A DNA stretch of 64,000 nucleotides from Haliotis rufescens (lineage: Eukaryota), in NCBI RefSeq assembly GCF_023055435.1, contig NW_025964334.1, forward strand, positions 46,376,001 to 46,440,000. Reading direction: 5' to 3'. Positions 20,101 to 62,031 of the stretch are shown in pieces. Made by a program: the position numbers and the translations under genes. Position 1 is the stretch's first letter. Each line of letters starts with the position of its first letter. The notes under the pieces were generated by a model that had not been told where the DNA came from, made no database searches, and saw only the letters and a program-made list of their open reading frames with translations.

Positions 20101-20262
20101 TTTTGCAATGCAAAAGAGAAAAATATAGCACCATCTGCTTTTTCAGGGGTGGCCATCACCAGCACCAGTGTGAAGCCTGTGTTTGTGCCAGCCAGTGGTC
20201 ACATGATAGGGGCCTTCCCCACAGACAGGAACATGATCTTCACTCCCAACAAGTCACAGTAG
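17109..20262 (+). CDS. Renalase-like FAD/NAD(P)-dependent oxidoreductase (~406 aa)
   Basis: Exons 17109-17241 (MANILNPQQMQSPRVAIVGGGVSGL, GxGxxG Rossmann motif), 17604-18575 (GGRCSSR, FDHSAQYFT, AHNGKCA, NKVPQENIP, QLWGAA, GICGDW) and 20147-20262 (GHMIGAFP...SQ*). Phases 1/1 are consistent. Probable 5'UTR intron 13555-17031. Confidence 0.88.
19065..19615. repeat. 43-44-bp minisatellite (~12 copies) in an intron of the oxidoreductase gene
   Basis: Unit gtgtaagggccatgcttaccaggtactattgtggatatattgca. Confidence 0.93.
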
Positions 20263-23200
20263 GTGTTGCCAGCACAGACAGGAACATGATCTTCACTCTC
20301 AACAAGTCACAGTAGGTGTTGCCAGCACAGACAGGAACATGATCTTCACTCCCAACAAGTCACAGTAGGTGTTGCCAGCACAGACAGGAACATGATCTTC
20401 ACTCCCAACAAGTCACAGTAGGTGTTGCCAGCACAGACAGGAACATGATCTTCACTCCCAACAAGTTATAGCAGGTGTTGCCAGCACAGACAGGAACATG
20501 ATCTTCACTCCCAACAAGTCATAGCCGGTGTTGCCAGCACAGACAGGAACATGATCTTCACTCCCTACAAGTTATAGCAGGTGTTGCCAGCACAGACAGG
20601 AACATAATCTTTACTCCCAACAAGTCACAGCAGGTGCTTGCCAGCACAGACAGGAACATGATCTTCACTCCCAACAAGTTATAGCAGGTGCTTGCCAGCA
20701 CAGACAGGAACATGATCTTCACTCCCAACAAATCATAGCCGGTGTTGCCAGCACAGACAGGAACATGAACTTCACTCCCAACAAGTTATAGCAGGTGTTG
20801 CCAGCACAGACAGGAACATGATCTTTACTCCCAACAAGTCACAGCAGGTGCTTGCCAGCACAGACAGGAACATGATCTTCACTCCCAACAAGTTATAGCA
20901 GGTGCTTGCCAGCACAGACAGGAACATGATCTTCACTCCAAACAAGTCACAGCAGGTGCTTGCCAGCACAGACAGGAACATGATCTTCACTCCCAACAAG
21001 TTATAGCAGGTGCTTGCCAGCACAGACAGGAACATGATCTTCACTCCCAACAAATCATAGCCGGTGTTGCCAGCACAGACAGGAACATGAACTTCACTCC
21101 CAACAAATCATAGCTGGTGTTGCCAGCACAGACAGGAACATGATCTTCACTCCCAACAAATCATAGCAGGTGTTGCCAGCACAGACAGGAACATGAACTT
21201 CACTCCCAACAAGTTATAGCAGGTGTTGCCAGCACAGACAGGAACATGAACTTCACTCCCAACAAATCATAGCCGGTGTTGCCAGCACAGACAGGAACAT
21301 GATCTTCACTCCCAACAAGTTATAGCCGGTGTTGCCAGCACAGACAGGAACATGAACTTCACTCCAAACAAATCATAGCCGGTGTTGCCAGCACAGACAG
21401 GAACATGATCTTCACTCCCAACAAATCATAGCAGGTGTTGCCAGCACAGACAGGAACATGATCTTCACTCCCAACAAATCATAGCCGGTGTTGCCAGCAC
21501 AGACAGGAACATGATCTTCACTCCCAACAAATCATAGCCGGTGTTGCCAGCACAGACAGGAACATGATCTTCACTCCCAACAAGTTATAGCAGGTGTTGC
21601 CAGCACAGACAGGAACATAATCTTCACTCCCAACAAATCATAGCCGGTGTTGCCAGCACAGACAGGAACATGAACTTCACTCCCAACAAATCATAGCCGG
21701 TGTTGCCAGCACAGACAGGAACATGATCTTCACTCCCAACAAGTTATAGCAGATGTTGCCAGCACAGACAGGAACATGAACTTCACTCCCAACAAATCAT
21801 AGCCGGTGTTGCCAGCACAGACAGGAACATGATCTTCACTCCCAACAAGTTATAGCAGGTGTTGCCAGCACAGACAGGAACATGATCTTCACTCCCAACA
21901 AATCATAGCCGGTGTTGCCAGCACAGACAGGAACATGATCTTCACTCACAACAAGTTATAGCAGGTGTTGCCAGCACAGACAGGAACATGATCTTCACTC
22001 CCAACAAATCATAGCCGGTGTTGCCAGCACAGACAGGAACATGATCTTCACTCCCAACAAGTTATAGCAGGTGTTGCCAGCACAGACAGGAACATGAACT
22101 TCACTCCCAACTAATCATAGCTGGTGTTGCCAGCACAGACAGGAATATGATCTTCACTCCCAACAAGTTATAGCAGGTGTTGCCAGCACAGACAGGAACA
22201 TAATCTTCACTCCCAACAAGTCACAGCAGGTGCTTGCCAGCACAGACAGGAACATGATCTTCACTCCCAACAAGTTATAGCAGGTGCTTGCCAGCACAGA
22301 CAGGAACATGATCTTCACTCCCAACAAATCATAGCCGGTGTTGCCAGCACAGACAGGAACATGAACTTCACTCCCAACAAGTTATAGCAGGTGTTGCCAG
22401 CACAGACAGGAACATGAACTTCACTCCCAACAAATCATAGCCGGTGTTGCCAGCACAGACAGGAACATGATCTTCACTCCCAACAAGTTATAGCAGGTGT
22501 TGCCAGCACAGACAGGAACATGATCTTCACTCCCAACAAATCATAGCCGGTGTTGCCAGCACAGACAGGAACATGAACTTCACTCCCAACAAGTTATAGC
22601 AGGTGTTGCCAGCACAGACAGGAACATGATCTTCACTCCCAACAAGTTATAGCAGGTGTTGCCAGCACAGACAGGAACATGATCTTCACTCCCAACAAAT
22701 CATAGCCGGTGTTGCCAGCACAGACAGGAACATGAACTTCACTCCAAACAAGTTATAGCAGGTGTTGCCAGCACAGACAGGAACATGATCTTCACTCCCA
22801 ACAAGTTATAGCAGGTGTTGCCAGCACAGACAGGAACATGATCTTCACTCCCAACAAATCATAGCCGGTGTTGCCAGCACAGACAGGAACATGAACTTCA
22901 CTCCCAACAAGTTATAGCAGGTGTTGCCAGCACAGACAGGAACATGATCTTCACTCCCAACAAATCATAGCCGGTGTTGCCAGCACAGACAGGAACATGA
23001 ACTTCACTCCCAACAAGTTATAGCAGGTGTTGCCAGCACAGACAGGAACATGATCTTCACTCCCAACAAATCATAGCCGGTGTTGCCAGCACAGACAGGA
23101 ACATGATCTTCACTCCCAACAAGTTATAGAAGGTGCTTGCCAGCACAGACAGGAACATGATCTTCACTCCCAACAAGTCACAGTAAGTGTTGCCAGCACA

Positions 23201-23814
23201 GACAGGAACATGAACTTCACTCCCAACAAGTCACAGTAAGTGTTGCCAGCACAGACAGGAACATGAACTTCACTCCCAACAAGTCACAGCAGGTGCTTGC
23301 CAGCACAGACAGGAACATGATCTTCACTCCCAACAAGTCACAGTAAGTGTTGCCAGCACAGACAGGAACATGAACTTCACTCCCAACAAGTCACAGCAGG
23401 TGCTTGCCAGCACAGACAGGAACATGATCTTCACTCCCAACAAATCATAGCAGGTGTTGCCAGCACAGACAGGAACATAATCTTCACTCCCAACAAGTCA
23501 CAGCAGGTGCTTGCCAGCACAGACAGGAACATGATCTTCACTCCCAACAAGTTATAGCAGGTGCTTGCCAGCACAGACAGGAACATGATCTTCACTCCCA
23601 ACAAGTTATAGCAGGTGCTTGCCAGCACAGACAGGAACATGATCTTCACTCCCAACAAATCATAGCCGGTGTTGCCAGCACAGACAGGAACATGAACTTC
23701 ACTCCCAACAAGTTATAGCAGGTGTTGCCAGCACAGACAGGAACGTGATCTTCACTCCCAACAAATCATAGCAGGTGTTGCCAGCACAGACAGGAACATG
23801 ATCTTCACTCCCAA
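20220..23814. repeat. 53/54-bp minisatellite (~67 copies) that begins inside the last coding exon of the oxidoreductase
   Basis: Unit cacagacaggaacatgatcttcactcccaacaagtcacagtaggtgttgccag. The first unit supplies codons TDRNMIFTPNKSQ and the TAG stop (20260-20262). Confidence 0.96.
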
Positions 23815-25482: not shown

Positions 25483-27161
25483 AATGTCATGTGAAGAGAC
25501 GTCATCAAGACAAAGTATGCCCTGCACAGAGACTCCAGGAAATAGTGTTGGCATCATATAAACCAAGACTTCTTGAAGCAATTGAAATCATATGGCGATA
25601 TGCAATCCACCTGACAGGCACAAACAATGGAACTATGCAAGGATGACATGACTGGTAAATGTAAAATCTACTGAAAGCATAATCAATTAGATGAGGTACC
25701 GGTATGTTTAGATATGAAGAAAATGGATATAAACCTTTCATAAGTTCAAGAAAAGCTGTGTTATGAAGATCACATTTTATTTGTGAACAACACTATAAGA
25801 GGAATATTTTGAATGGCTGCTCAGCAGCCAAGATGTGAGACAAGCCCCTGAGATGTACGAGAACACAATCTATCAGCTTCTATCAACCAGGAAGCTAAAG
25901 AAATACCATTCAACTTTGGTTTCCAAACCGAGACACAGTACTTCTTTTAACACTTCAAAATGAATGTGTTCTCAAAATACAATGGCACATGTTTACACAA
26001 AATTAATATCCAAATAGTTTGATCTGAATTAGTATGTAAGAAGAATGTTTTGGCACCTTGTCTGGTATATACTGAGGATGTTTCCTATATAGGCACATTG
26101 ATAATAGTTACTAGTGCCGTTATGTAACTACACAGTGAACTGTTGCAGTAGGTAACTTGAGATGTCATGAATCTGCTCCACATAGCAGTTAACTTTGGTC
26201 CTGGTGACGGATCTAAGGCAGGTATCACTTTTACGCAACAGTTAAGTTGATTCAATGCAATCTCATTGCACTCAGTTCTTTCACAGCTTTCTAAATGATA
26301 TGACTCCACTTCCGTACCACTTGATTCAGTCATTTCTCCACTCAGAGAGGTATTTTATTGGAGTAAGAGATTTGATCTTAATGAGATTGATCCCATATGT
26401 ATACACATATATTCCTTAGAATGAATCACCCAGAAAAGAACATCATGTAGTGTGGGTTGATGGATTTCAAGGTACATGTAATGAACATTATATATGGAAA
26501 TGAAACATCACCAGTGCTTCTTAGCTACAACCAAACAGTCGTTGTCATGGAGATAGGTTTGGAACGGCTCAACAGCATCACAAGACACTAATAAAATAGT
26601 TATAGAATGGTGTTTGGTGTTCACTGTATATGATCAAAACTACGTAGTTAACACTTGTTTTATTTTTAAAGTTAATAAATTTGAACTACATCCATCCAAT
26701 AACTAGATTAGGGTATGACACCACCTCCCCCCCCCCCCCCCCCCGATAGTGTGCAATGATGAAATAATGCCCTATGGACAATAAATATATTCAAAATAGA
26801 TACTAATTTCATGATGATACTACCAACTGCATGCTTAGTACCTAAGATCAATGAAGATTCAAACTACCGCATAGTGAGATTTTTCTTGTCTATCATAAGA
26901 CAAGTGAGTATTACACCACTCTTGCCGAATGAAATGTTTGAAAATAACAGTACCCGGAAAGAAGTTGAATCAATACCCGATGCAGATATATGATTTGCTT
27001 AATGAATCTTAACAGGTTTTGAATGGATAGTCAATGCAGGTATGATTTGCTTAATGAATCTTGTCCTTCCTGTTATAGCACGATGTGGTGTATTGTTGTT
27101 CCGACTTCAGTGGCATTTTATCAGAGATATGGCTAGCCACACACACGACTTCTTGACCAGT

Positions 27162-30100
27162 CTATTTGTCCTTCTTGGCTTCAATAACACCATTGGCTGT
27201 TACAACGCTACCGTTCCTCTTGTGACCTCGTGTTGTACCATTCGCAACTTTGCCGTTGGAGACTTGTGCCTTTGAATCCCCTCCCTGCAGCAGAGGCAAT
27301 ATGTGATGTAGACATGTGACTCGGTAAGCCATGTACACAATTTGAAATAACATGTTTGAACAGGCAAAAATTTAATGTGATTAGGACACAAATAATCTTT
27401 GAAGAAATGCTATACTTTCATTGTGACAAATGCTATATCAGTCTGGATTAATTTAGCTGTTTTGAAGGAAAAATGCTATTGGTCCTTCAAGTTCCAACAA
27501 GTTTAAAACTAAAAATTGTACAAGAGAATGAAAACATACACTCCCATTAAAAGTATCTTAAATATTTTGTTCCCCATTTTCTCTCTGGGTCGTCTGTTAC
27601 CCCTTTCACCCCATCTCTTGTACATATTGACAGATCCACTATGAATGGTTACGAACATGAGCTTTGAAAGCTTTCATCTTTTATATCCTGGTTGCATCAG
27701 CATAAAGTGCCCACCCATCATAAAGTATAATGCCCACCCATCATAGAGCATAATGACTACCCATCATAGAGCATAATTACCACCCATCATAAAGTATAAT
27801 GCCCACCCATCATAGAGCATAATTACCACCCATCATAAAGTATAATGCCCACCCATCATAGAGCATAATGACTACCCATCATAGAGCATAATTACCACCC
27901 ATCATAGAGTATAATGCCCACCCATTATAAAACATAATGCCCACCCATCATAGAGCATAATTACCACCCATTATAGAGCATAATTACCACCCATCATAGA
28001 GTATAATGCCCACCCATTATAGAGCATAATTACCACCCATCATAGAGTATAATGCCCACCCATTATAGAGCATAATTACCACCAATCATAGAGTATAATG
28101 CCCACCCATTATAGAGCATAATTACCACCCATCATAGAGTATAATGCCCACCCATTATAAAACATAATGCCCACCCATCATAGAGCATAATGCCCACCCA
28201 TTATAGAGCATAATTACCACCCATCATAGAGTATAATGCCCACCCATTATAGAGCATAATTACCACCCATCATAGAGTATAATGCCCACCCATCATAGAG
28301 CATAACGACTACCCATCATAAAACATAATGCCCACCATCATTAAAGCATAATGCCAATCCATAGAATAGTATAATGCCCACCCATTATTGAGCATAATTA
28401 CCACCCATCATAGAGCATAATGCCCACCCATCATAGAGCATAACGACTACCCATCATAGAGCATAATACCCACCCATAAAGCATAATGCCCACCCATCAT
28501 AGAGCATAGTACCCACCCATAAAGCATAATACCCACCCATAAAGCATAATGCCCACCCATCATAGAGCATAATGACCACCCATCATAGAGCATAATACCC
28601 ACCCATAAAGCATAATGCCCACCCATCATAGAGCATAATGACCACCCATAAAGCATAATGCCCACCCATCAAAAAGAATAATGCCCACCCATCATACAGC
28701 ATGACACCCAACTATAATAAAGCATAATGCCTACCCATGGTAAAGCATAACACCCAAACACTGCCATCCAAATACATTTTGTATTTCTTATGACTGAACT
28801 GAAAGTAACGAGCCCACTACCTACCTGCTTCAGTCCTATAATGAGAAGTTCTGGCCAACTATGTGTGCAACATACTGAAACTATGTGATGATGGTGATTA
28901 CACCATGAGGATACTACCCTGCTGAGCCACACAAACCTCCACCCCTGTAGCCACTATTCGCTAGCAGTGGACAATGGTACGCTGATCGTCACTATGAATA
29001 CTGCTTAGAACAACCGCCGTGACGACACCAAGTCGACCGTTGTGGGTGCAAGTCTGGGCTCATGGTTTTACCTTGGTCTTGGCTGATCGAGATTTCAAGT
29101 AGGTGTGGAAGTAGAAGTTGAGAAACAGAAGAAGAATGGTGAACGCGTAAATTATCAACGCCCAGTGTAGAGCTTCCGGGAAGTCGCAACCATTCGTCAG
29201 CGACTGAACAGCATGCACGATTCCGGTCACAAACTGAATCTAAAACGGCAGAGAAAACAAAAAGTGTAAAAACTAATTTACCTTTGATTTAGACGTGGGC
29301 TTTTTCTTGAGGTATGCTTGGATGTAAAAGTTGATAAATAGGGTGATAATTGTTATTCCATAGACTAGGCCCGCATACTGCATCCAATTGGGAAAGTCGC
29401 ACTCTATTAACAATCCTTGGATTCCGTACACCATTCCGATAAAGAATTGGAGCTACAAGCAGAAGAGAAATACGCATGCATAAAGGACGTGCCGTAGCAC
29501 CAAGCTTGCTTCAGGTCTTGCAGTCAGTTAGGTTTCATTCACCATAATTTACTGTTATCAGGAAGATCGTGAACTTGGAACCAAGCCTCCAAGTATTACT
29601 GTAAGTATGTTAGTGTCAGGCGTGAAGATAGTATGATATGACAAAGGGGATGAAATAGTCCATATAAAATGTACCGGGTATATAATTCAAGAGTTTTCCG
29701 AGTGTAACATCTATCGGTACATGCTATGACATATTTAAGAAATTCATAATTTTGTGTATTTGGCTTTCGTTTTGGTAATTATTTCTTTTCTTATGTTTCA
29801 TACACAAACTGCCATTGTCATATCATGAGGTTGACTCAGGAATCTATGACTGAGAGTCTCAGTGAGGAGGTGAGATTACAGTCATGCCTACACAAGGTAG
29901 TCACGCGGAACATAAAGCAAGAGGTAGCTACAATATCTATATACCTTCTCACTTCATTATGAAACATATACAAAGTTATTCATTGTACACACAAACATTC
30001 ATGCTTAGCACAAGTGTAGGTGCAAAAACACAAAGATGATCCAAAAGAAAGTATTTCAGAAAGCATTCTCAAACAGATTTAAACTCATTCAGACAAAACA

Positions 30101-33100
30101 CATTTCAAAATGGGAATGTTTCCAGTAGGAAAGTCATTTCGTTTACTTGTCATTAACATGTAGATTGTCTGGTTTTAATGAGGATGGTAGGTCATGATAC
30201 TATTGTGAGAAGCATTTGACTCTTGTTAAACAAAGCATTAGTGTATTAGTCTGAGCAGCCTTGCATCAAGCAACATTTCTGGAGGGCCTGTTAGAAAAAG
30301 CATTAGTCTATAAGGAAGAAGAGTACCTAGCTCAGTCAAACATGAGCATTTGTTGATTACAATGAGAAGAGGCCAGGCAGAAGAATGCAGGGGTAAGTGA
30401 GGATATCATTACACAAAACACACAGAGTTATATAGTTGTACGTATTGTTTTCTGGTTAAACTGCTAATAATAAGCATGGTACTCAAAACAGTCGGATACA
30501 TCAGTTGGGAAAGTTTCCTTGCGATGCCCAAGTTATGATTTGGATGTTAAAAAGTTATGGATTGGTCTGTATCGTATTTGTCTGAACACCCCACCAACCC
30601 CATTGTCTTAGGTACTTGTACTAGTTGCCCCCTCCCTCCCCTCCTAAATACATGTAACAGTTTTTCATGATCACTGCACAACAAATCAACAAATAGAACT
30701 GTGTGTCTTTTTTCATCCCTCCCTACACCCGCCACACACAGCAATTAGTCACCATGACAATCTCTCATTTTCAGTAGTGACTGGGGCGATTGAATCACCT
30801 GGGCATCTACAGATGTTTTCAAAATCTGTTCATGTTTTTAATCAAGGTGCTCAAATGATTTGATGCACTACACAGGGCAAGACCTGTTTTATTAAAATAT
30901 AGATCTTGATTATCGATCAGATAGTCTTGACTGGGCACCGCCATTTTGTTTGAAGCAAATGCAAGTGACACGAGAGATGGAATCTGAGAAGGAACATACA
31001 CGGGGCATAACTTGTAATAGCCACTAGTGGCGCTACGATCGAGCCACGAAATTCCAGCCTAGTTCGGCAAAGGTGGAACTGGACTATTATCATCAGTTAA
31101 CATCCTTGCCTCGGGGAGATGGCAGCAAGACTACCTGCTCATGCATGGGCTATAGAAGGTGGTGGAAATACAAGATGTGATAAATACAAGTAAAAGGAAA
31201 ATAAGGGATATATATAAAAGGAAACTATTGGATAACATGTAACTAGTGGAACACATATGTAGGATAAGACTGCAAGTAACTCAGTTCACAAATCCATTAA
31301 CACAGTAAAGATGTATCTGCGCACATGGTTTCTAAAGTAAACTTTGTTCTAGGCAAGCTTGTTTGCTGACAACATCAGGTTTGCATGCGTACTTCAATAT
31401 TCATTGCTAGCTCCATTCTTACGAGGAAACTAAGGGGAAACCATACCATGATGGTATGTCATCCTCACAAAAGTGACATTTGTGAAAATGAAGATTATTC
31501 GTCACTCCACAACCGATTCATAATTGACATAATGTGGAAGCAAAATGTTGCAATGACATACCATCACCCTGATTAATGAAGAAATGTTAAATGTTGTGAT
31601 ACAAAGATACGCTAATTTGAACTATTTCTCAAAACAAGAATATAAACAATTTGAAAAAGCAAATTAATCAAAGCCTACATGTTACAAAAAAGGATAAAAA
31701 AAGGATTAAACACAGGGTTAAAACATGAAGTAACAAAACATAACAAAATAGGTCAGGAAGAAAGTGATAGGAAAACCATGGAAACATTGAGATTATTTAG
31801 ATTATAACTATCACACTTCTAAGTGTATGCTGTGAAGCCCATTTCTGATGTCCCCTGCCATGATATTGCTGGAATATATGCCATGATAAGCGGAGTAAAA
31901 CCATACTCACTCACTCACTCACTATGCTCTTGAAGCAAGTCACACTATGAGGCAACTAAACTAGAAGCATCCTCGTCGCCCTGTATCATGAATGTAACAT
32001 TCTTGACAGATGAGTCGGCCGGGTAGTCAGGATCAGTGACTTGGCTGATTGTGTGTCACCCCACCCCAACATAATGGGATGTAACGCATAAAATCAATCA
32101 CTGGATTGTCTCGCCGAGACTTGATTATTTACAGACCGCCATCATATAGCTGGAATATTGCTGAGTGCGGTATTAAACAACAAACAAAAACTACACAAAC
32201 ATGTCAGTTGCTTATAGTTGAACTAGTACCTAGCTGAGACAGATCTCATTAACATCAGGTCTTGGATACTCGCTACGGCTACAAAAAAGAACTGAGGACA
32301 TCTCATTACAGATCACATCAGAATGACGTTTCGTCTGACCAATCGAGCTTTGCTTACAAGATCGCAAATGTTAATGTCCAAATGTGTTTTTTGATCATGC
32401 CATCTCGAAAAGTATAACATAGGGCATTTTGAACAACAGTTAATGGCTGTACGACTGATTCCGATATCATCTATCTCTTGCTTCAATGGAATAAACATTT
32501 GAAATGGAAGACTTTCCCTAACCCATAAGAAGTACTGCCATACCATTTCAGCCATCTATTAGACATTTTTTTCTTCAGTTTCAAATTTTGAATTCCCGCC
32601 ATTTTCAAACTAGTGCCATAAAGCTTGAGAAAGCTGCTTTCTGATTGGCAAATGCGTACTTCCTGTCATTTTGTTAGACAAAGTTTGTGGAAGGTCGTTC
32701 TGACATGACCTGTAATGTGATGTCCTCAGATTTTTGGTATTGCGGTAGCGAACATTAAGATTTGATTTAAATGAGACTAAGCTTAACTTGGACGGTCTAA
32801 CCTGCATACAAACAAACACTATGCAAGATTGGGGTACAACCACAAAAGAATACTCTAATCTGTTGGTGCCCAGAGCGTAATCGTTACTATGGAAAAAAAG
32901 CAACATCAAAATCTGATAATGAAATTCTGACAAAATAACAGCACTGGACATGCTAGAAACGATTTCATTGCTAATGCAACCACACTAAGTAAAGGATGAG
33001 TTAATTATTACCACATTTACAATATATGCCAAGTTAATAACTATCTAAGTTAATGCACAAGTTAATTTTGGTCAATTCTAACAAAATGGATCGAACATTC

Positions 33101-36100
33101 TCTGGATGGTAGTCTACCAAGAATGCACTTCTGGCCGTGCCCACTGGTTGTTTTCATGCAAGAAATATTTACATGTCACATGCAGTGTTGGTTCTGATCT
33201 CAAAATCTCAGCACACACATTGGCCACGCAGAACAAAGCCTGGACTCACAGGCTGATCTCACAATTCTTGTCCACAAACTTTGGGAAGAACATCAACTTC
33301 TTGGCACTTTTGGAACTGTAGCACGTAAAATTGTAATCAGTGCTTTCTATTGATAGCAAAGTGACCTTGACCTACAACAGGTTGCCTTGGCCTTCACCAG
33401 CATCAACATTCCTGTTTGGAGTGAGACAGAAATACACTGCACACCGAGTGGCAAAAAACAAGAGACTAAGAAAGCAGACACATGGCATGCCCCTATGTAC
33501 ATTCTAGTCAGCTGCTACTGCATTCACATGTCCAGCTGTCTTGGTTGACGAAAGTTCAGTTTGCACCCGAAATCTGACACATTATTTCATCAAATAATGA
33601 AAGATGTGTCAAGGTGCACCATCACGGCAGTCATGTGTCAGCCATCTCTGCCCTACACAGGTCAACAGCATGCAGAAAAGGTCAGAAATGGACTCACCAG
33701 CTGGAGTTTGGTCAGGTAGCGTTTCCACCACAGGTATTTTTGGTACTCTGGTCCGAGAGCCGACACACCATAATATGTGTACATCAAAACATGGATGAAT
33801 GAGTTGATCATGGCGCCGAAGAAGGCTGGAAGGTCAACATTTACAAGAAGGTCATTTCAAAGAACATTTGATTTGATTATTTTCCTTCTCAAAGATAGAA
33901 ACGCATATTTCATAGCCTTCAAACATATACATCTACTCCAAATTACTTTTCATTAAGGCTCTGTTCATTTATTACAAGAGTGGGGACAGGAATTTGTATT
34001 CTGTAGTTCATTGCAAAAACTAGGAATCTTCGCTTTATGTCGTTTTTAATTTTAGCCTCCCTCAAATTACATCTACTTTTTAATAACAAATCTTTGTTTT
34101 CTGCTTGTTTTGATACTTTAATTTGAGTATTATTTCATGACCTCCCCTGAGCATTTAGTATTTTTTACAAAATTATCTTCCTTCCCCAATCATCCACACA
34201 CAAAAAACGTAGTCTTATATCATTGTGACAGAAGTGTCATTTATATAAGATCTGCACTGTGTGTGTTCAGTAATCAGTCCAGCATTAGTTCTAGATGTCC
34301 TGTGACAAGCAGGTATACTCACACTGTCCACCAGCGACCCACTTGATGCCGACCCACCAGATGGGAAACATGGAGGCATGGTGGTACACGTGCAGGAAAC
34401 TCACTTGGTTGTCCTTCTTACGCATGATGAAGAATATAGTGTCCAGCATCTCCACACACTTGGAGAAGTAGAACCACCACAGTGCACTGGCTACCTGTAG
34501 GCCAATAACAGACATGTTACACAGGCGCTCACAGACAATACAGGGCAATAATAGGCACTTGCAGACAATACAGGGCAATAATAGGCACTTGCAGACAATA
34601 CAGGGCAATAGTAACAGACAATACAGGGCAATAGTAACAGGCACTCACAGACAATACAGGGCAATAATAGGCACTTGCAGACAATACAGGGCAATAATAG
34701 GCACTTGCAGACAATACAGGGCAATAGTAACAGGCACTCACAGACAATACAGGGCAATAGTAACAGGCACTCACAGACAATACAGGGCAATAATAGGCAC
34801 TTGCAGACAATACAGAGCAATAGTAACAGGCACTCACAGACAATACAGGGCAATAGTTACAGGCACTCACAGACAATACAGGGCAATAGTAACAGGCACT
34901 CACAGACAATACAGGCCAATAGTAACAGGCACTTACAGACAATACAGGGCAATAGTAACAGGCACTCACAGACAATACAGGGCAATAGTAACAGGCACTC
35001 ACAGACAATACAGGGCAATAGTAACAGGCACTCACAGACAATACAGGACAAAGATAACAGGCACTCACAGACAATACAGGGCAATATTAACAGGCACTCA
35101 CAGACAATACAGGGCAATAGTAACAGGCACTCACAGACAATACAGGGCAATAGTAACAGGCACTCACAGACAATACAGGGCAACAGTAACAGGCACTCAC
35201 AGACAATACAGGGCAACAGTAACAGGCACTCACAGACAATACAGGGCAATAGTAACAGGCACTCACAGACAATACAGGCCAATAGTAACAGGCACTCACA
35301 GACAATACAGGGCAATAGTAACGGGCACTCACAGACAACACAGAGCAATAGCAGACATGTCTTACGGCTAGTTGACAAACATGAGTGTGCCAAATTATGT
35401 CCAGCCCCTCAGTTGATCAAGAGACTAGTAGACAATTTTGCACCTGAGCTTATGCAGCATCTTTAAATTTGCCTTTGCTAAAACCTCTACATTGCCTGGG
35501 ATAAAATCAATATATTAACTTGCTCCTAAACAATACATAAACAATACACAAGTCAATGAGTGTAGTTTCTTATTACATCAGTGTACCCCTCACACATGTT
35601 TGTCTAATGTTCACAAATGCCTTACTAATTATTTTCACAATAGGTTGAAAAGTCCCAGTTTCTTACTAAACGCTTGGTTTATGACAGTTTTAGTTGTACT
35701 ATGTCAGTTGTACCAAGCAGCTATTGTCTTACCTTCATTTCACCATGCTCTCTGGTGTAGTTGACAGGCTGACAGGAATAACTATAATTTAACTTTGTTG
35801 AATACCATAGAAGCTGAAACAGGAAACAAATTGCCTTGCAGTCATCCACATCATTTTTAAAAAAGACACCAACGACATTATTGCACAAACCATTTCAAGG
35901 CACTTTTATTTCTAAAAACAGTGGATGTTGTTATCTTTAGTTTGGCCTAGACTAAGAATATTGTTTAAACCATTCTTAATACATACATCGTATTTCTACA
36001 GAAATAAGAGACAAACTATTACTATGGTCCATTGCACTTGTGAATGTGATATTTGCTTTATGTGTGAGCAAAGACTACTTCAAGATTAAATCTCTCAAAA

Positions 36101-37916
36101 CCATAAATTATTATCATAAACTTACCTGGGAACATATATGGAAGTTCATTACAATTAAACCAAAATTGTAGAAAAATAATGTCCATTTGAATTTAAACGG
36201 CTCTCTGTCTTTCATTATTTTTGGCCCAACCCATACTGCAAACAAATACAATGCTGTGATGGCTAGTGTGGGTGTGTAACTCTGCATGAACAACCAGTCC
36301 TTGACTCGGTCATCTGAAACATACATATAGGTCATGTATCACACACAACATATTATCACAGAAAATTGACTCAAAGGAAATTCTTAAATAGGATACAATT
36401 TACAAATTTACGCCATATTGTCCCAATGTTATAGAGAAACCAAATAAATTCCAAAACAACTGGACTTTGTCAATCTAAAAGTTTACAACCATTCAAAAAA
36501 ATGTCTATCCATAAGACTTTGAGCTATTAATGGGGCATATGAGAAAAGAATGACTTTTTTCCTGAAAAGATTTGTCCATTAACTGGCACATTTAGGTAGA
36601 CTGTCTGTAGTTGTATGTGAATAACTTTACATTGTAATTAATCTTAGATAAATGCAGTCACATCAGAAACCATAGCTCTAAATACACTACAGATTAAATA
36701 ATCTTCGTATCGGAGAAGCAGGCCTCCTCAGAAGTAAATATACACGTCACTGTAACATACTACGCTGAAACCGGGGGCATGTTTAGGAGGGCGCACTCAG
36801 CAATATTCCAGCTATATGATGGCGGTCTGTAAATAATCGAGTCTGGACCAGACAATTCAGCGATTAATATCATGAGCAATGACCTACGCAATTGGGATAC
36901 GATGACATGCATCAACCATGTCAGCGAGCCTGACCAATCGATCCCCTTAGTTGCCTCTCAGGACAAGCATAGTCACCTCTTTTACGGCAAACATAGCTTG
37001 CTGAAGATCTATTCTCTATCCGGATCAAAATATTAAAAAGGCAATGAAGCTTTGAATGGAAGATCTAGTCTAAAAGATTATTCTTTAGACATCAGTTTCA
37101 TTCTGGTTCAAGGCAAACATAGCTTATCAAATATGCAACAAAAAATATAAATACACTATTGAAATAAAGCAAATGCATATACTACAACTATTGGATAAAA
37201 GGATTGCGTATCAACCGATCACGTAATTCACTAACCGACAGTTACACTAGGAAGAGATTGTACGACAACAAACTTGAATAGCGCCTTGTCAATGTATCTT
37301 AAACAGCTGCTGATTGATGACTAAAAATATAGTGCCTTTCTTACAATGCTAGGTTTTGCAAACAAAAATGTCTTGGAGGGGGAGCTGCAAGCAGGCGTAG
37401 ACGGATATACTACTATTCATTTAGATTTAAATAATTTACAGGAATTGTTACAAAAAAGCTTTTCAAATTAAAATACCCAAATGTCAAGAAACAGGTAGGC
37501 AAAAAAGTCTGAAAACCCTCTAAAACTTGTGGATACCCAATCAAAATCAAATCTTTGGGTAATATACCCAATAACTAAAAGCTTATCTGGAGCTCTGTGA
37601 CTCAAACAAATTCATGCTCAATAAAAATAACAGAAATTGAGCTTCACATTTAGAGATGCATTAAATTCAAAAGGTGTGGCTGAAAAGTGACCTGGTGAAA
37701 GCAGAAATGCACTGTATTACAATAATTGAATATGTCTGCTTGCCAACAACTGCGCTATTCCTGGTGGGCCTGCTCAGTAAGTGCATGTTGTGAAATGTAA
37801 ACACTATGTCTCAATAGTCACATTGTCGACACACTAACAAAACACCCACCTGCTTGTGTCAGTGCCCATGCATAGAACTTTTGAAAATGTTCAACTTTAT
37901 CTGTAATCAGCTCCAT
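27162..37916 (-). CDS. ELOVL4: Very-long-chain fatty acid elongase, ELOVL4-like (gene A), 308/309 aa
   Basis: Coding exons (minus): 37916-37850, 36313-36126, 35813-35733, 34494-34323, 33825-33698, [29452-29282 or 29239-29072], 27284-27162. Motifs [41 protein letters not shown] and C-terminal KKDK ER-retrieval signal. Orthology to ELOVL4 is inferred from motifs and exon sizes (188/81/172/128), not from a tree. Confidence 0.92.
27700..28750. repeat. ~23-bp minisatellite (~45 copies) in the last intron of ELOVL gene A
   Basis: Unit catagagcataatgcccacccat with variants. Confidence 0.92.
29072..29239 (-). CDS. ELOVL gene A alternative exon 6b (168 nt, phase 0-0)
   Basis: Acceptor ttttctctgccgttttag; [56 protein letters not shown]; donor AAG|gtaaaa. 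Confidence 0.88.
29282..29452 (-). CDS. ELOVL gene A alternative exon 6a (171 nt, phase 0-0)
   Basis: Acceptor tttctcttctgcttgtag; [57 protein letters not shown]; donor AAG|gtaaat. Confidence 0.88.
30790..31120 (+). repeat. Interspersed repeat; a second copy at ~43685-44285 is interrupted by a SINE
   Basis: catgtttttaatcaaggtgct...gcaaatgcaagtga...gctacgatcgagccacgaaattccagc...ccttgcctc aligns with 43700-43860 plus 44121-44285. Confidence 0.75.
31825..32190 (+). mobile_element. Two adjacent SINE 3' fragments
   Basis: 31825-31925 matches the 53235-53372 family (tgtgaagcccatttct...actcactcactc). 32010-32190 matches the 40448-40706 family (caatcactggattgtct...tagctggaatattgctgagtgcgg). Confidence 0.7.
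32244..32779. mobile_element. ~530-bp MITE with long imperfect TIRs; inverted second copy at 45876-46380
   Basis: tctcattaacatcaggtctt...ctcgctac versus gtagcgaacattaagatttgatttaaatgaga. Internal agtactgccatac...ccatctattagac occurs reverse-complemented in copy 2. Confidence 0.7.
34505..35358. repeat. 30/33-bp minisatellite (~25 copies) abutting the acceptor of ELOVL gene A exon 4
   Basis: Unit acagacaatacagggcaatagtaacaggcactc. It accounts for the long repetitive ORFs at 34491-35466. Confidence 0.94.
36790..37025 (-). mobile_element. SINE-like interspersed repeat (family of 40448-40706)
   Basis: Reverse complement of the gaagatc...tagaatag...ctggtccagactcgattatttacaga...gctggaatattgctgagtgcg element. 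Confidence 0.8.
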
Positions 37917-39394
37917 CTTGCTCAACCTGTAACCAAAACACAACAACAGAGTAAGTAATACACTCAAAGGCAATCGCACATGTCATATATTAAAAAGTTC
38001 ACAAGAGTCCAAAAATCTTTTACAAGTGTCATTACTGTAGAGAGAAGCTCAAATATTTTGTGCAGCAATCTGCAATATTTCATCTACATAAATAAAACAC
38101 AAATCCAACTGCTGAAAAAAAGAAGAATAATTCTAAAAGTAAATTTGATTAATATGTAATTGGCTTTAAAATAAATTCCATACTTGATAACACAAAACTG
38201 AATTATATCAGCATTCAGTTCCTTGTCGTGTACGATATTGATCAAGTAGACCACCTAACTCCAATCATGTTGGCTACTACCAAATCACATGTCAAGGCCT
38301 GCCAACTCCTTGCTCACGTTCAACCTTTGAACTGTTTTAAGCTTGTGTTTTGGGGCAGTATTTTAGCAACAGGCATGACACTCCACATCAAAGCAAAAGA
38401 GGTCATGATTCCAGATCCTGTTCAGGCTTGAAGACAGATGGCACGGCCTGGTATGCATGTATACACCAGGGGATGAATGACTACCCTGTTGCTAGGGGCA
38501 ACCAGGTTTCAGGTACCGTAAGGATCAGAGAAAGAATGCATGGTTGAGTGGTCAATAACACAAGGAAGCATATACTCTCTCCCTGTTGCCCTAACATCCA
38601 CACAATGAACATTGATTGAGTAGTTTCAGCATCTATCAATATTGGTGTAGATCGTGCTCCCTTCAAATCTTAGCCACATAATATTAAACTGTTTACTTAG
38701 AAACAGGTGATTAGAAATCTGACGTTGTAATTCATACAGTTTGTGAAACTGAGACATTGTTTTGCAAATAAATACACAATTATTAACTGCTACATTGATT
38801 TATATCATAACATTTTAGACAAGTGGTATTAGAAAGACACAAACATGTGACTGCCAAAGTGCCTGAGCCCTTTAGAAACATTCTAATGACTCAAATTATA
38901 TATAGAATGTTTGTTGGAATATGGCCACAGCACATGTAGAATAAGGCAGGAATATATAGTTAAATGTTGATAACCCTTAGTACACATTTTAGACCGCTCT
39001 CTCCTCTACCAGGTTGTGATAAAAAATAACATGCGATCTGTTTTCAACTACAAGCAATAACAGATTACAGTGGCCCATCAATATTTGGTATTGAACGGTC
39101 CATAATTTATTCAAATGGCCTATTATGGCCCTGGTAATAAAATAATTCATAATGTAGACCAGATAACTCTACTCTGACAGCTTTGAAGCAAATGAACATT
39201 TTGAGGAAACAATCACAACAGGAAATTCACCAATCATAACCACAAGAAGACTGCACACTTTCATCATAAGTTGGCATGATATCATCACCAAGCTAAAGCT
39301 GTCATGGAATCACCAGACCCACATACTTTTAAAAAGTGCAGTATAGGGAATCCCAGGTTTTGACTGCAATAATCTGTGCTTTTGTGATTACACG

Positions 39395-56261: not shown

Positions 56262-59200
56262 ATGGCAGCCTTTACAGCACTAATGGACAAATATAAATCG
56301 GCCACAACCGATCTCAGAGGTGAGAACATCATGGCTTAAACATATAGAGGAGAGGATATTTAGTGGTGGTTAAAAAATATGCTCAGTGCTCAACATGCAA
56401 GAGTTTTGACAATAGTATAGCCGACCTACTTGTAGATAACCATTTGCCCTATGTGATCTATGGCATGGGGTGGTTGGTGGTGTTCACTGATAACATATAG
56501 TTTTTAATATTGCTAACAAAAAGCTATAAACCAAAGTCCTTCATTCATTAATAGGAATTTCATATCTCAATATCCTGCAAAGTTTGTAGCAAAGAATCTA
56601 AAATGATGAAGGATGTGTCTCAAATTTATATTACTTACTGTACTATATGCAAAGTAGCAATTGCTTAAAGAACTCCTTCCATGTAATAATACAGTCTTAT
56701 TGAATTATTTACCGTGTTTATCATGTTTATCATGTTAACTGACAGTTGATCCACAGAACGGGGGCACAGGTGGCCCAGTCGTCTAAGGCGCCGCGATTTG
56801 CTGAACAGAGTTGTGTCCCTTGGGCACGCCAGAAACCTATGATTGTGGGTTCGAATCCCGGTTCCCCTGATTATGTTTCTAGGTTTGTCCGCACCATACC
56901 CGTGCTCGTGGGTTTCACCGAAGTGGTAAACGCCTGAGACCTGCATCACTTCGGGCTTTCCTCCCACATTAAGCTGACATGCCTTGATATAACAGGAATA
57001 CTGTTAAAAAGGGCATTAAACCCAACTTACTCACTCACTGATTGACAGAACTCATATAAGTCTGATTAAGAGTTACTGTAGTAGATGATAACCACTGATA
57101 TCTATGCTGTAGTAGATGATAACCTCTGATATCTATGCTGTAGTAGATGATAAACACTGATATCTATACTGTAGAAGATGATAACCACTGATATCTATGC
57201 TGTAGTAGATGATAACCACTGATATCTATACTGTAGTAGATGATAACCACTGATATTTATACTGTAGTAGATGATAACCACTGATATCTATGCTGTAGTA
57301 GACGGTAAACACTGATATCTATACTGTAGTAGATGATAACCACTGATATCTATGCTGTAGTAGACGATAAACACTGATATCTATACTGTAGAAGATAACC
57401 ACTGATATCTATGCTGTAGTAGATGATAACCACTGATATCTATGCTGTAGTAGATGATAACCACTGATATCTATGCTGTAGTAGATGATAACCACTGATA
57501 TCTGTGCTGTAGCAGATGATAACCACTGATATTTATACTGTAGTAGATGATAACCACTGATGTTATGCTGTAGTAGATGATAACCACTGATATCTGTACT
57601 GTAGTAGATGATAACCACTGATATTTAGACTGTAGTAGATGATTACCACTGATATTTATACTGTAGTAGACGATAACCACTGATTTTTATACTGTAGTAG
57701 ATGATAACCACTGATATCTATGCTGTAGTAGATGATAACCACTGATATTTATACTGTAGTAGATGATAACCCCTGATGTTATGCTGTAGTAGATGATAAC
57801 CACTGATATTTATACTGTAGTAGATAACCACTGATATCTATGCTGTAGTAGATGATAACCACTGATATCTATGATGCAGTAGACGATAACCACTGATATC
57901 TATACTGTAGTAGATGATAACTACTGATATTCATGCTGTAGTAGATGATAACCACTGATATATATGCTGTAGTAGAGGATAACCACTGATATCTATGCTG
58001 TAGTAGATGATAATCACTGATATCTGTGCTGTAGCAGATGATAACCACTGATATTTATACTGTAGTAGATGATAACCACTGATGTTATGCTGTAGTAGAT
58101 GATAACCACTGATATCTATACTGTAGTAGATGATAACCACTGATATTTATACTGTAGTAGATGATTACCACTGATATTTATACTGTAGTAGACGATAACC
58201 ACTGATTTTTATACTGTAGTAGATGATAACCACTGATATCTATGCTGTAGTAGATAACCACTGATATTTATACTGTAGTAGATGATAACCCCTGATGTTA
58301 TGCTGTAGTAGATGATAACCACTGATATTTATACTGTAGTAGATAACCACTGATATCTATGCTGTAGTAGATGATAACCACTGATATCTATGCTGTAGTA
58401 GATGATAACCACTGATATCTATGCTGTAGTAGATGATAACCACTGATATTTATACTGTAGTAGATGATAACCACTGATGTCTATACTGTAGTAGACTATA
58501 ACCACTGATATTTATGCTGTAGTAGACGATAACCACTGATATCTATGCTGTAGTAGATGATAACCACTGATGTTATGCTGTTTGTAGATGGTAATTATGG
58601 TTACTGATATGTTATGTAGACCTCCGGACTGATGGATGGTTTCTGATGGAGTCTGTGTGGCCGACAGTGGCTACAGTTTTGGTGTATCTTGTCATTGTCG
58701 CCTGGGGTCCCCGATTGATGTCCAATCGACCAGCCTTCCAGCTCAACAACGTCCTTGTCGCATACAACTTCTGTCTCATGCTGCTATCAATGTACATGGT
58801 CTTTGAGGTAATCCACCCTTGTTTCGTTAATGTTGTACTCTGCATTACATTTATCAGGTATATGGGTTGCCTAGCCGTCTAAGGATGTGCCGAGTTGCAG
58901 CCCTTAGCTGTGTCAGGATCCAATGATCACAAGTTTGAATCCCAGATTCACTTCCATTATGGTGATTTATGATCCTTGGTCACATCCATGCTCATGGCTT
59001 CAAGTGGTAAACATCTTGGCCACACTTGGTGTCCTCCCACATTAAGCTGACACACTGTGATGTCACTGAGCTATTTCTCAAAGCAGGATTAAGCCCAACC
59101 CAAATAGATCCAGCATCCCTGATACCAGTAAGTCCACCATACTCAACAATGGCTGGACCCTCTTCCACAAAGCAACTTTGGCGCAAGGACGGTTTTAACT

Positions 59201-62031
59201 CCCATACTTCAACCTTGACCTACAACAGTCCCAACCTGTAGGTTGCTTTGTGAAACAGGGCCCTGGCCCTAAATGTCTAATTCGGTAATAAGCTAGGGCT
59301 AACAGACTAAAATAATTCAACATGATCAAGTAAAGTCAGAAAGTCAGCTGTTATCTTCAATGTGAGCCAAAGACTTATTATTCTACCTTTAACATCATTA
59401 TGGTTGATTTACCTTAATAGGTAGAGATGTTAGACTGAAATACGTTTTTCTAGGCACAAGTTTCACCAACTAAGCACCTAACATGCTCATCTCATGCCAT
59501 TTTGTATTGCTGTCCACTTCAGTTTGTGGTCTCTGCATGGCTGCGTCCAGGGTTCAGTCTGGCCTGTCAAGCTGTGGACTATTCCAGTGATCCCATGTCA
59601 GTCAGGGTGAGTTGCCACTACTTACTCTTCAGATACACAACAAATGTTGCAATTGGAAAGCCCTCTCTGCGACACTGACTATAGATATTTCCTTCATAAA
59701 ACATGGTGCCTACCGCACAAACTGGTACTATTTACAAAACAGTAGTTTTATTGTTACACTGTACTGACGAAACAAGATGGAGGGGTGATATTTTGTTTAT
59801 CAATGCATGATTTGTGCTGTTTTATCATTGACTGAGTATGTGCTGTGTTTCAGCTGGCGCATGTGTGTTGGTGGTTTTACTTCTCCAAGCTTATAGAGCT
59901 ACTAGATACCGTGAGTACTTACTGTTGTTCTTGTATTTGGGCGACATGCCTAGTTTTTAACTACTAAAAACTGGATGACACTGGTTTGTCCGGCCAATGA
60001 AATTATTAACAGAAAGTCAACATTAGCCTGTCAGAAAATAGCTTTCTCAAGCTTTACGAACCTAGTTTCAAAAAGGAGACTTCCATTCCAGACTATGCTT
60101 TGAGAAATATTTTGACAAAGTTTTTGATTCAAATTGTGTGATTTCTGCAGGTGTTCTTTGTTCTGCGGAAGAAAGGTAGCCAGATCTCATTCCTCCATGT
60201 GTACCATCACTCTACAATGCCCATACTCTGGTGGGCAGGGGTCAAATTCGTCGCAGGAGGTGAAGGTCAGTGTCACAATGTCAATGCCAAACAATGGATA
60301 TTTTATGTGATCTCTTAAGCTAAATTATGTGTCAGCATTCACAGTAAACTGTTTGTGGTTACAAGAAACATTTTGATCATTTTGGTCATCAGTAACATTC
60401 TTTCATTTGGATTTTGAACCTTTTTATTCTCTGAAATGGTAAAACGATGATGAGTGTAATGAAAATTTGTGTGTGTTGCAGGTTACTTCTCCGCCAGCAT
60501 CAACAGCTTCGTCCACGTCCTGATGTACCTGTACTACCTCCTGTCTGCGATGGGGCCCAGCATGAGGAAGTACCTCTGGTGGAAGAAGTACATGACCTCC
60601 ATACAGCTGGTGAGTAGTCACAGCCGACACCTGGCGTTAGGGGAGTCTGGCCATTTGATACTCTGCTTGGTAGTCACAGCCGACACCTGGTGGTAGGGGA
60701 GTCTGGCCATTTGATACTCTGCTTGGTAGTCACAGCCGACACCTGGTGTTAGGGGAGTCTGGCCATTTGATACTCTGCTTGGTAGTCACAACCGACACCT
60801 GGCGTTAGGGGAGTCTGGCCATTTGATACTCTGCTTGGTAGTCACAGCCGACACCTGGTGTTAGGGGAGTCTGGCCATTTGATACTCTGCTTGGTAGTCA
60901 CAACCGACACCTGGCGTTAGGGGAGTCTGGCCATTTGATACTCTGCTTAGTAGTCACAGCCGACACCTGGTGGTAGGGTAGTCTGGCCATTTGATACTCT
61001 GCTTAGTAGTCACAACCGACACCTGGCGTTAGGGGAATCTGGCCATTTGATACTCTGCTTAGTAGTCACAACCGACACCTGGTGTTAAGGCGAGTCTGGC
61101 CATTTGATACTCTGCTTAGTAGTCACAACCGTCACCTGGTGGTTGGGGAGTCTGGCCATTTGATACTCAGCTTAGTAGTCACAACCGATATCTGGTGGTT
61201 GGGGAGTCTGGCCATTTGATACTCTGCTTAGTAGTCACAACCGACACCTGGTGTTAAGGGAGTCTGGCCATTTGATGCTCTGCTTAGTAGTCACAACCGA
61301 CACCTGGTGGTTGGGAAATCTGGCCATTTGATACTCTGCTTAGTAGTCACAACCGACACCTGGTGTTAAGGCGAGTCTGGCCATTTGATACTCAGCTTAG
61401 TAGTCACAACCGACACCTAGCGTTAGGGGAGTCTGGCCATTTGATACTCTGCTTAGTAGTCACAACCGACTCCTGGTGGTTGGGGAGTCTGGCCATTTGA
61501 TGCTCTGCTTAGTAGTCACAACCGACACCTGGTGTTAAGGCGAGTCTTGCCATTTGATAGTCTACTGGGTTGTAGTCAAGATTGACACCTGGTGTTGAGG
61601 CAAGTCTGGCCATTTGATACTCTGTTTGGTAGTCACGAGATGAGAGAAACTTGACATTTCACTCGACACTGGAAATTTTTACCTTGGATATTACTTCCCC
61701 TGGGAAGAATCTGGAGGGTGGATAAATACCCTGTTACATGCTTCTCCTCCTCCTCCCACAGGTGCAGTTCTGGGCCATCCTCATCCACACCAGCTACTCC
61801 ATTTACCTGAACTGCGGCTACCCCCTTGGCTACAACATCGGCTTCCTCTCCTACATGATCTCACACATCGTCCTGTTCTCCAACTTCTACTACCAGGCCT
61901 ACATCAACAAGTCCCATCATTCTGCCCCACTGAAGAACGGTAGCGCCAAGACCAAGCACCAGAACGGAGTCATGAACGGCACCGTTAAAAGCGGAGTCAC
62001 AAACGGCAAACTGCGGAAGCGGATAGAATGA
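56262..62031 (+). CDS. Very-long-chain fatty acid elongase, ELOVL family paralogue (gene B), 299 aa
   Basis: Coding exons 56262-56319, 58620-58807, 59523-59606, 59854-59910, 60151-60265, 60482-60609, 61762-62031; all GT-AG and in phase. Motifs [45 protein letters not shown] and LFSNFY; basic C-terminus KLRKRIE. Confidence 0.94.
56760..57040 (+). mobile_element. tRNA(Leu)-headed SINE
   Basis: A box GGTGGCCCAGTCGTCTAAGGCGC, B box GGGTTCGAATCCC, actcactcact tail. Related copies at 3928-4195 (-) and 58860-59105 (+). Confidence 0.82.
57072..58615. repeat. 31-bp minisatellite (~49 copies) ending at the acceptor of ELOVL gene B exon 2
   Basis: Unit ctgtagtagatgataaccactgatatctatg. The last degenerate unit forms the acceptor ...actgatatgttatgtag|AC at 58619. 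Confidence 0.95.
58860..59105 (+). mobile_element. Diverged tRNA-derived SINE
   Basis: gcctagccgtctaagg, gtttgaatccc, aagtggtaaac and cctcccacattaagctgaca are shared with 56760-57040. Confidence 0.65.
60614..61636. repeat. 56-bp minisatellite (~18 copies) starting within the donor site of ELOVL gene B exon 6
   Basis: Unit gtagtcacagccgacacctggcgttaggggagtctggccatttgatactctgcttg. It begins at intron position +5 (CTG|gtga-gtagtcac) and fills most of the 1152-nt intron. Confidence 0.95.

Follow-up and report, generated by a model that had tools for sequence, protein, structure and literature searches.

In the present study, a stretch of 64,000 nucleotides (nt) from the genome of the abalone Haliotis rufescens was analysed (NCBI RefSeq assembly GCF_023055435.1, contig NW_025964334.1, positions 46,376,001 to 46,440,000 of the forward strand; hereafter the window, numbered from its first letter). 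The work concerns an ELOVL4-like elongase gene on the minus strand of the window, in which two similar exons, here called 6a (A-type) and 6b (B-type), lie side by side over the region of the sixth and seventh transmembrane segments (TM6 and TM7) of the protein. A search over the GT and AG sites left a single GT-AG exon chain possible in the window, and its members are listed in Table 1. This chain was checked exon by exon with the phase carried from one exon to the next. The product containing exon 6a agrees at every residue with RefSeq isoform X1 (XP_046367572.1, 309 amino acids, aa), and the product containing exon 6b agrees at every residue with isoform X2 (XP_046367573.1, 308 aa); outside the alternative exon the two proteins are identical. 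The donor of exon 5 and the acceptor of the last exon are common to both alternatives, and these flanking exons are the ones named in the original prediction, which was made from the letters alone: the first ends in KLQL and the second in KKDK followed by the stop. The KKDK C-terminus is a predicted dilysine motif of the type used in retrieval to the endoplasmic reticulum. Apart from the spacer between 6a and 6b, the introns of the gene measure 312-4245 nt, and the 42-nt spacer is one-seventh of the next shortest.

Table 1. Positions of the elongase gene features and of the neighbouring elements in the window.
Feature	Position	Strand	Remarks
Coding exon 1	37850..37916	-	67 nt; ATG at 37916; matches residues 1-22 of XP_046367572.1 exactly
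Coding exon 2	36126..36313	-	188 nt; TM1-TM2 region; exact match to both RefSeq isoforms, AG/GT flanks
Coding exon 3	35733..35813	-	81 nt; exact match; loop cysteine C99, disulphide partner of C230
Coding exon 4	34323..34494	-	172 nt; K..E..DT box and histidine box LHVYHH; Pfam ELO positions 87-144
Coding exon 5	33698..33825	-	128 nt; N...H..MY.YY; ends ...TKLQL, phase 0; Pfam ELO positions 142-182
Alternative exon 6a (A-type)	29282..29452	-	171 nt, 57 aa; RefSeq isoform X1 residues 213-269
Alternative exon 6b (B-type)	29072..29239	-	168 nt, 56 aa; RefSeq isoform X2
Spacer, 6a donor to 6b acceptor	29240..29281	-	42 nt
Branch-point-like motif TTTAC	29266..29270	-	A at 29267; read from the sequence, candidate branch point
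Last coding exon	27162..27284	-	123 nt including stop; Gly/Asn-rich tail ending KKDK
Second ELO gene, exon pieces	58616-58813, 59851-59913, 60151-60267, 60475-60609; last exon 61762 to stop 62031	+	
Minisatellite, 23-nt unit x46	27699-28750		intron between exon 6b and last exon
Minisatellite, 33-nt unit x23	34614-35351		intron 3
Minisatellite, 56-nt unit x18	60613-61636		begins right after the donor of the second ELO gene's exon at ~60609
Minisatellite, 31-nt unit x50	57076-58594		just upstream of the second ELO gene
Minisatellite, 53-nt unit x68	20220-23814		accounts for the composition shift at 20-24 kb

Exons 6a and 6b are adjacent and homologous, similar in length and equal in phase, and each has its own splice sites, which is the picture of a tandem exon duplication. 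Both are free of stop codons and are phase 0-0. A pyrimidine-rich tract precedes each of them; exon 6a is entered after tgtag and left through gtaaat, and exon 6b is entered after tttag and left through gtaaaa. The original prediction had described the same two intact exons, separated by 42 nt, and their coordinates, their AG and GT sites and the length of the spacer were all confirmed. The gapless alignment of the two peptides was also reproduced exactly, with 22 identical residues out of 56, all of them among the first 49; when one gap is allowed the identity becomes 24/57 (43%), and at the nucleotide level 85/168 positions are identical. The search of the 64-kb window with exon 6a using tblastn recovered exon 6b at E = 9e-14, so that the likeness between the two exons is far beyond chance. 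Taken singly, each exon exceeds the Pfam ELO gathering cut-off of 27, with 35.7 and 40.1 bits over profile positions 183-240/241, and the upstream exon 5 stops at profile position 182, directly before these matches. Thus, either exon completes the ELO domain. Within the 1.33-Gb assembly the tandem pair is found at this locus only. A duplication produced by the assembly process was rejected because each exon has a single match in the whole assembly, and a pseudo-exon reading was rejected because both exons are intact with good splice sites.

The complete proteins belong to Pfam family PF01151 (ELO / GNS1-SUR4), in which X1 scores 231.2 bits and X2 scores 234.4 bits against the same cut-off over positions 2-240/241. 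The ELO boxes are present, with KCVEMLDT and LHVYHH in exon 4 and N...H..MY.YY in exon 5, and the T..Q..Q box straddles the junction of exons 5 and 6 (TKLQL followed by L or I and then Q), its last Q being supplied by either alternative exon. The ELOVL4 subfamily assignment is a putative one, drawn from names and best hits: the matches are named ELOVL4 or ELOVL4-like, and vertebrate ELOVL4 proteins are 51-55% identical. NCBIfam returned no model for the abalone elongase. Over the catalytic core the Haliotis numbering equals that of human ELOVL7, and the alternative block corresponds to residues 213-269. The residues K124, D130, H150, H151, N177, H181, Q211 and Q214, together with C99, were invariant in two protein alignments; according to the preprint describing the ELOVL7 structure, the first eight are essential or line the pocket. 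The same preprint describes TM2-7 as a barrel around a 35-Å substrate tunnel, places Q211 and Q214 in the malonyl pocket between TM5 and TM6, reports a disulphide link between the TM6-7 loop and the TM2-3 loop (C99-C231), and finds the positions that line the acyl chain to be poorly conserved among the ELOVL proteins.

AlphaFold models of both abalone isoforms have a mean predicted local distance difference test (pLDDT) score of 80, with pLDDT 82-92 over residues 210-260. In both models the TM6 helix spans residues 204-227, and the TM7 helix spans 234-260 in X1 or 234-267 in X2. Compared with human ELOVL7 (6Y7F), both models give a TM-score of 0.89-0.91 on the target and a root-mean-square deviation of 1.9-2.0 Å, and the sequence E-values against the same entry are 7e-67 and 2e-70. 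Both isoforms are accordingly modelled as the complete seven-TM ELOVL7 fold with its six-helix barrel. Within the protein, the alternative exon supplies TM6 in its C-terminal portion, the loop bearing C230, TM7 and the beginning of the tail; the region maps to ELOVL7 residues 213-270, comprising TM6, the disulphide loop and TM7, and the claim that the TM6-TM7 region is swapped therefore stands. X1 and X2 differ at 33 positions, which are spread over the C-terminal portion of TM6, the loop joining TM6 to TM7, TM7 itself and the opening residues of the tail. The two isoforms have TM1-TM5 and all catalytic boxes in common. Q211 lies in the constant exon 5, and both alternative exons retain Q214 (the second Q of T..Q..Q), C230 and the NFY..Y motif, for which reason X1 and X2 should both be active condensing enzymes.

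Relatives of the exon pair were collected with a profile of both exons against 1.8 billion representative proteins, followed by a search with a full-length relative as query and by cluster look-ups, which led to the RefSeq proteins of Haliotis. In place of the spliced products of the window, the RefSeq X1 and X2 proteins, which are identical to them, were used. For the abalone gene, X1 with exon 6a and X2 with exon 6b annotate one exon per mRNA, and one exon per protein is likewise found in the pairs of 15 other species. Pairs of proteins that are identical outside an exon-sized block were observed in the gastropods H. cracherodii, Gigantopelta, Pomacea, Littorina, Babylonia, Aplysia, Biomphalaria and Physella, and an A-type and a B-type isoform are both present in H. 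rubra. The same block separates isoforms or cDNAs in the bivalves Dreissena, Saccostrea, Sinonovacula and Mya, and isoform pairs in the annelid Owenia and the brachiopod Lingula. Proteins encoded on transcript contigs, taken as short contigs of 1-7 kb with spliced coding sequence, numbered 48, of which 6 contain the A-type exon, 29 contain the B-type exon, 13 are unclear and none contains both; in Crassostrea, many transcript-type contigs were seen for each of the two forms. The RefSeq isoforms use either A or B, and such pairs are met again in Mollusca, Annelida and Brachiopoda and in part in a nemertean; exons 6a and 6b thus very probably stem from an ancient tandem duplication and serve as mutually exclusive alternatives in an ELOVL4-like gene, which is what the original prediction had proposed. 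In the nemertean, Tubulanus polymorphus, X1 is B-type, and X2 contains an A-type exon, after which a divergent hydrophobic tail takes the place of the shared C-terminus; intron read-through or an alternative last exon may account for this tail.

Several points weigh against the reading of 6a and 6b as mutually exclusive exons. First, proteins with two copies of the exon do exist in the databases, always in the order A then B, and they occur only in gene models that submitters predicted on genomes. These GenBank models come from Nucella lapillus (350 aa), Biomphalaria pfeifferi, B. glabrata, Bulinus truncatus, Elysia marginata, Sinanodonta woodiana and Tegillarca granosa. Second, the lengths of both exons are multiples of three, and a transcript with both would stay in frame and escape nonsense-mediated decay. 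Third, the expression of both forms in abalone is deduced from RefSeq models. Fourth, the minimum distance between donor and branch point was established in vertebrates and flies, not in molluscs. The first two points would suit a gene in which both exons normally enter one mRNA, yielding a protein of nine TM segments and about 365 aa. We consider this highly improbable, because both exons together are found in no RefSeq isoform pair and in 0/48 of the transcript-contig proteins, because the 42-nt intron is far below the other introns of the gene, and because the six-helix barrel of ELOVL7 leaves no room for a second TM6-TM7. Retention of the spacer would not yield a longer protein either, as it would read VN and then a stop at the third codon. 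The submitter models with both exons probably reflect errors of annotation, by which TM6-TM7 has been doubled.

Mutually exclusive use of 6a and 6b might be explained by the spacer itself. TTTAC is the sole y-U-n-A-y motif in the spacer, and its A is separated from the 6a donor by 15 nt and from the 6b acceptor by 27 nt. If this candidate, or any other branch point within a 42-nt intron, served exon 6b, it would be too near the donor of 6a (about 15 nt for the candidate), and the joining of 6a to 6b would be blocked. If the branch point of 6b were located upstream of 6a instead, the 42-nt intron would be left without any branch point, and the joining of 6a to 6b would be impossible too. Work on alpha-tropomyosin has established that a donor is not usable together with a branch point at so short a distance. 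Exons 2 and 3 of that gene resemble the abalone pair in that they are adjacent alternative exons; their joining is blocked by a branch point too near the upstream donor, as is proposed here for 6a and 6b. In alpha-tropomyosin, the branch point was reportedly mapped and the distance tested by mutagenesis by Smith and Nadal-Ginard in 1989, whereas in abalone the branch point and the distance are deduced from the 42-nt spacer, and the two abalone exons have clearly arisen by duplication. As a mechanism, steric exclusion through the 42-nt spacer is plausible and fits the sequence, with TTTAC as a candidate branch point.

The exclusion could also be real and yet non-steric, arising from competing RNA structures with docking and selector pairing, or from tissue-specific splicing factors, with the short spacer as a leftover of the duplication. 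Something must prevent co-inclusion, as it would be in frame, and many clusters of mutually exclusive exons rely on RNA pairing; docking and selector pairing is known from insect Dscam and 14-3-3 xi. In addition, the length of the spacer is apparently variable rather than fixed, with about 42-65 nt in two other genomes as estimated from open reading frames (ORFs) that read through the spacer. We nevertheless regard a non-steric mechanism as unlikely. Any branch point in the 42-nt intron would be at most 39 nt from the donor, and the sole fitting motif is the one at 15 nt. The scan for inverted repeats in positions 28600-30100 gave only short AT-rich pairs of 12-20 nt with 75-93% complementarity, none of which joins the spacer to a flank, and the Rfam scan of positions 26500-38500 gave no family match. 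No sign of competing RNA structures was thus observed in these two scans, which covered the abalone window sequence only.

The age of the two exon types was examined using a maximum-likelihood tree of 90 exon peptides over 52 alignment columns, too few to resolve the deep branching order. The A-type exons group in one starred clade, with support of 97/89 and 27 rows, comprising gastropods, bivalves, Owenia and the nemertean Tubulanus, and the B-type exons sit in the poorly resolved background of the tree among other ELOVL4 sequences. B-type exons have H9, L28, A32 and H45 in common with deuterostome ELOVL4, and A-type exons have their own conserved residues, Y9, G28, G32 and Q45, a signature that is also borne by Lingula X2; position 9 served to sort the rows and is hence circular, and positions 28, 32 and 45 are independent. 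By these residues, B is the ancestral-like exon and A is the derived exon. Compared with Haliotis, the identity across other genera and phyla is 52-75% for the A exon, 56-77% for the B exon and 65-78% for the constant region, and A and B inside one species are about 42% identical. Each type is thus about as conserved as the constant region, which indicates that the duplication predates the split of the phyla and that both copies have been under purifying selection since; together with the A-type clade and its own residues, this bears out the earlier suspicion of long selection on both copies. On the evidence of these peptides, the exon duplication is no younger than the molluscs, annelids, brachiopods and nemerteans.

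Within the genus, exon A is 100% identical in the X1 isoforms of H. rufescens, H. cracherodii and H. rubra, and exon B is identical in the X2 isoforms of H. rufescens and H. cracherodii; between the last two species, three residues differ in the constant region. This conservation also bears on the view that one of the exons is an unused or decaying duplicate and that the second isoform is an artefact of annotation. B-type proteins do outnumber A-type proteins by about 5 to 1 among the transcript contigs, which speaks for such a view. Against it stand the intact exons with their good splice sites, the complete identity of exon A in three Haliotis species, the A signature kept across phyla, and the A-type mRNA, of which there are cloned cDNA from Sinonovacula and many assemblies from Crassostrea. 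The probability of an unused duplicate therefore appears to be very small, and the use of both exons as alternatives remains the preferred reading.

Two further arrangements were observed among the relatives. In the protobranch bivalve Solemya velum, B-like and A-like forms are encoded by two adjacent separate genes (locus tags 016359 and 016360) with about 57% identical columns along the whole length; this represents either a duplication at the level of the gene rather than the exon, or a later gene duplication followed by the loss of one exon from each copy. In Octopus bimaculoides, X1 and X2 differ at the N-terminus only and both have the B-type exon. The A-type exon was not seen in the two cephalopods sampled, where it may be lost or merely unannotated.

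Concerning function, each mRNA would have exon 5 (...KLQL) spliced to one of the two alternatives, 6a or 6b, with the last exon following, and would yield an elongase of 309 or 308 aa. As Q211 is constant and Q214, C230 and NFY..Y are present in both exons, the switch would keep catalysis and replace the walls of the tunnel and portal. TM6 and TM7 would line the acyl tunnel, and TM7 would border the proposed lateral portal for the substrate; for this reason, the exon switch would most likely alter the acyl-chain preference or the kinetics, and we infer that X1 and X2 differ in substrate or product-length preference. In other elongases, the TM6 or TM6-TM7 region has been reported to set product length, through the TM6 lysine 'caliper' of yeast Fen1/Sur4 and through residues that distinguish Elovl2 from Elovl5. 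These cases concern the same part of the ELO fold as the abalone switch in different proteins, and they serve as a lead for functional inference only. Herein, we tentatively propose, at somewhat less than even chances, that the A/B choice is one module, more than 500 million years old, that gives lophotrochozoans two elongases per gene, chosen according to tissue, with the derived A exon shifting the acyl-chain preference, and that the literature treats its products as separate Elovl4_a and Elovl4_b or ignores them. On this proposal, the corresponding role in teleosts would be filled by gene duplication.

The exon switch as such is not new, being already present in RefSeq for the abalone gene and many relatives, and both forms have been cloned in a clam. 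The original prediction supposed that such a switch was undescribed for ELOVL4, and for the databases this fails, as RefSeq X1/X2 and the clam cDNAs QCF41171.1 and QCF41172.1 are the same two forms. XP_046367572.1 and XP_046367573.1 are the same object as the pair described here, and the same RefSeq pairs exist in H. cracherodii and H. rubra; RefSeq does not state mechanism, age or function. In Sinonovacula constricta, the cloned cDNAs Elovl4_a (QCF41171.1, B-type) and Elovl4_b (QCF41172.1, A-type) encode 291 aa each and differ only in columns 217-266. Because they are otherwise identical and contain B-type and A-type exons, they are, judged by sequence, orthologous splice forms of the abalone pair and one gene. 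The clam pair comes from a bivalve and was named as two elongases, whereas the abalone pair comes from a gastropod and is annotated as isoforms of one gene. According to papers that cite it (e.g. PMC11286186), Ran et al. 2019 (BBA 1864:1083) assayed four razor-clam elongases. In a 2015 survey, the oyster X1 and X2 were entered as two items, and a single Elovl4 is described as usual in invertebrates (PMC11286186, 2024). No paper describing a mutually exclusive exon in any ELOVL gene was found in a search that lacked most subscription journals, which makes this weak evidence of absence; a match to an Anopheles paper proved to be a methods sentence only, with no ELOVL exon switch, and was set aside. 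Two Elovl4 genes with partly different substrates and expression are described for teleosts (elovl4a/elovl4b) and for Platynereis (EloB/EloC) (PMC11286186). Those pairs arose by gene or genome duplication and differ over the whole protein, unlike the abalone gene, in which the TM6-TM7 region alone has been diversified by exon choice within one gene.

A second gene of the ELO family is present in the window at 58616-62031 on the plus strand, head-to-head with the ELOVL4-like gene and about 20.7 kb from its first coding exon. This gene has one copy of the TM6-TM7 exon, which is 31-33% identical to A and B and is joined to the C-terminal tail without another intron between them. Large minisatellite arrays were also observed in and around both elongase genes (Table 1).

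Marine invertebrates attract study as sources of long-chain omega-3 fatty acids, with their elongases tallied one gene at a time. Should a single ELOVL4 gene routinely give rise to two enzymes that differ in the TM6-TM7 region, elongase counts per gene in these animals would mislead. A single exon switch conserved over several lophotrochozoan phyla may have been under-appreciated, and it would provide a clear-cut example of mutually exclusive exons maintained over several phyla. Moreover, the two isoforms represent a natural minimal swap that bears on the way in which TM6 and TM7 govern the choice of substrate in the ELOVL fold.

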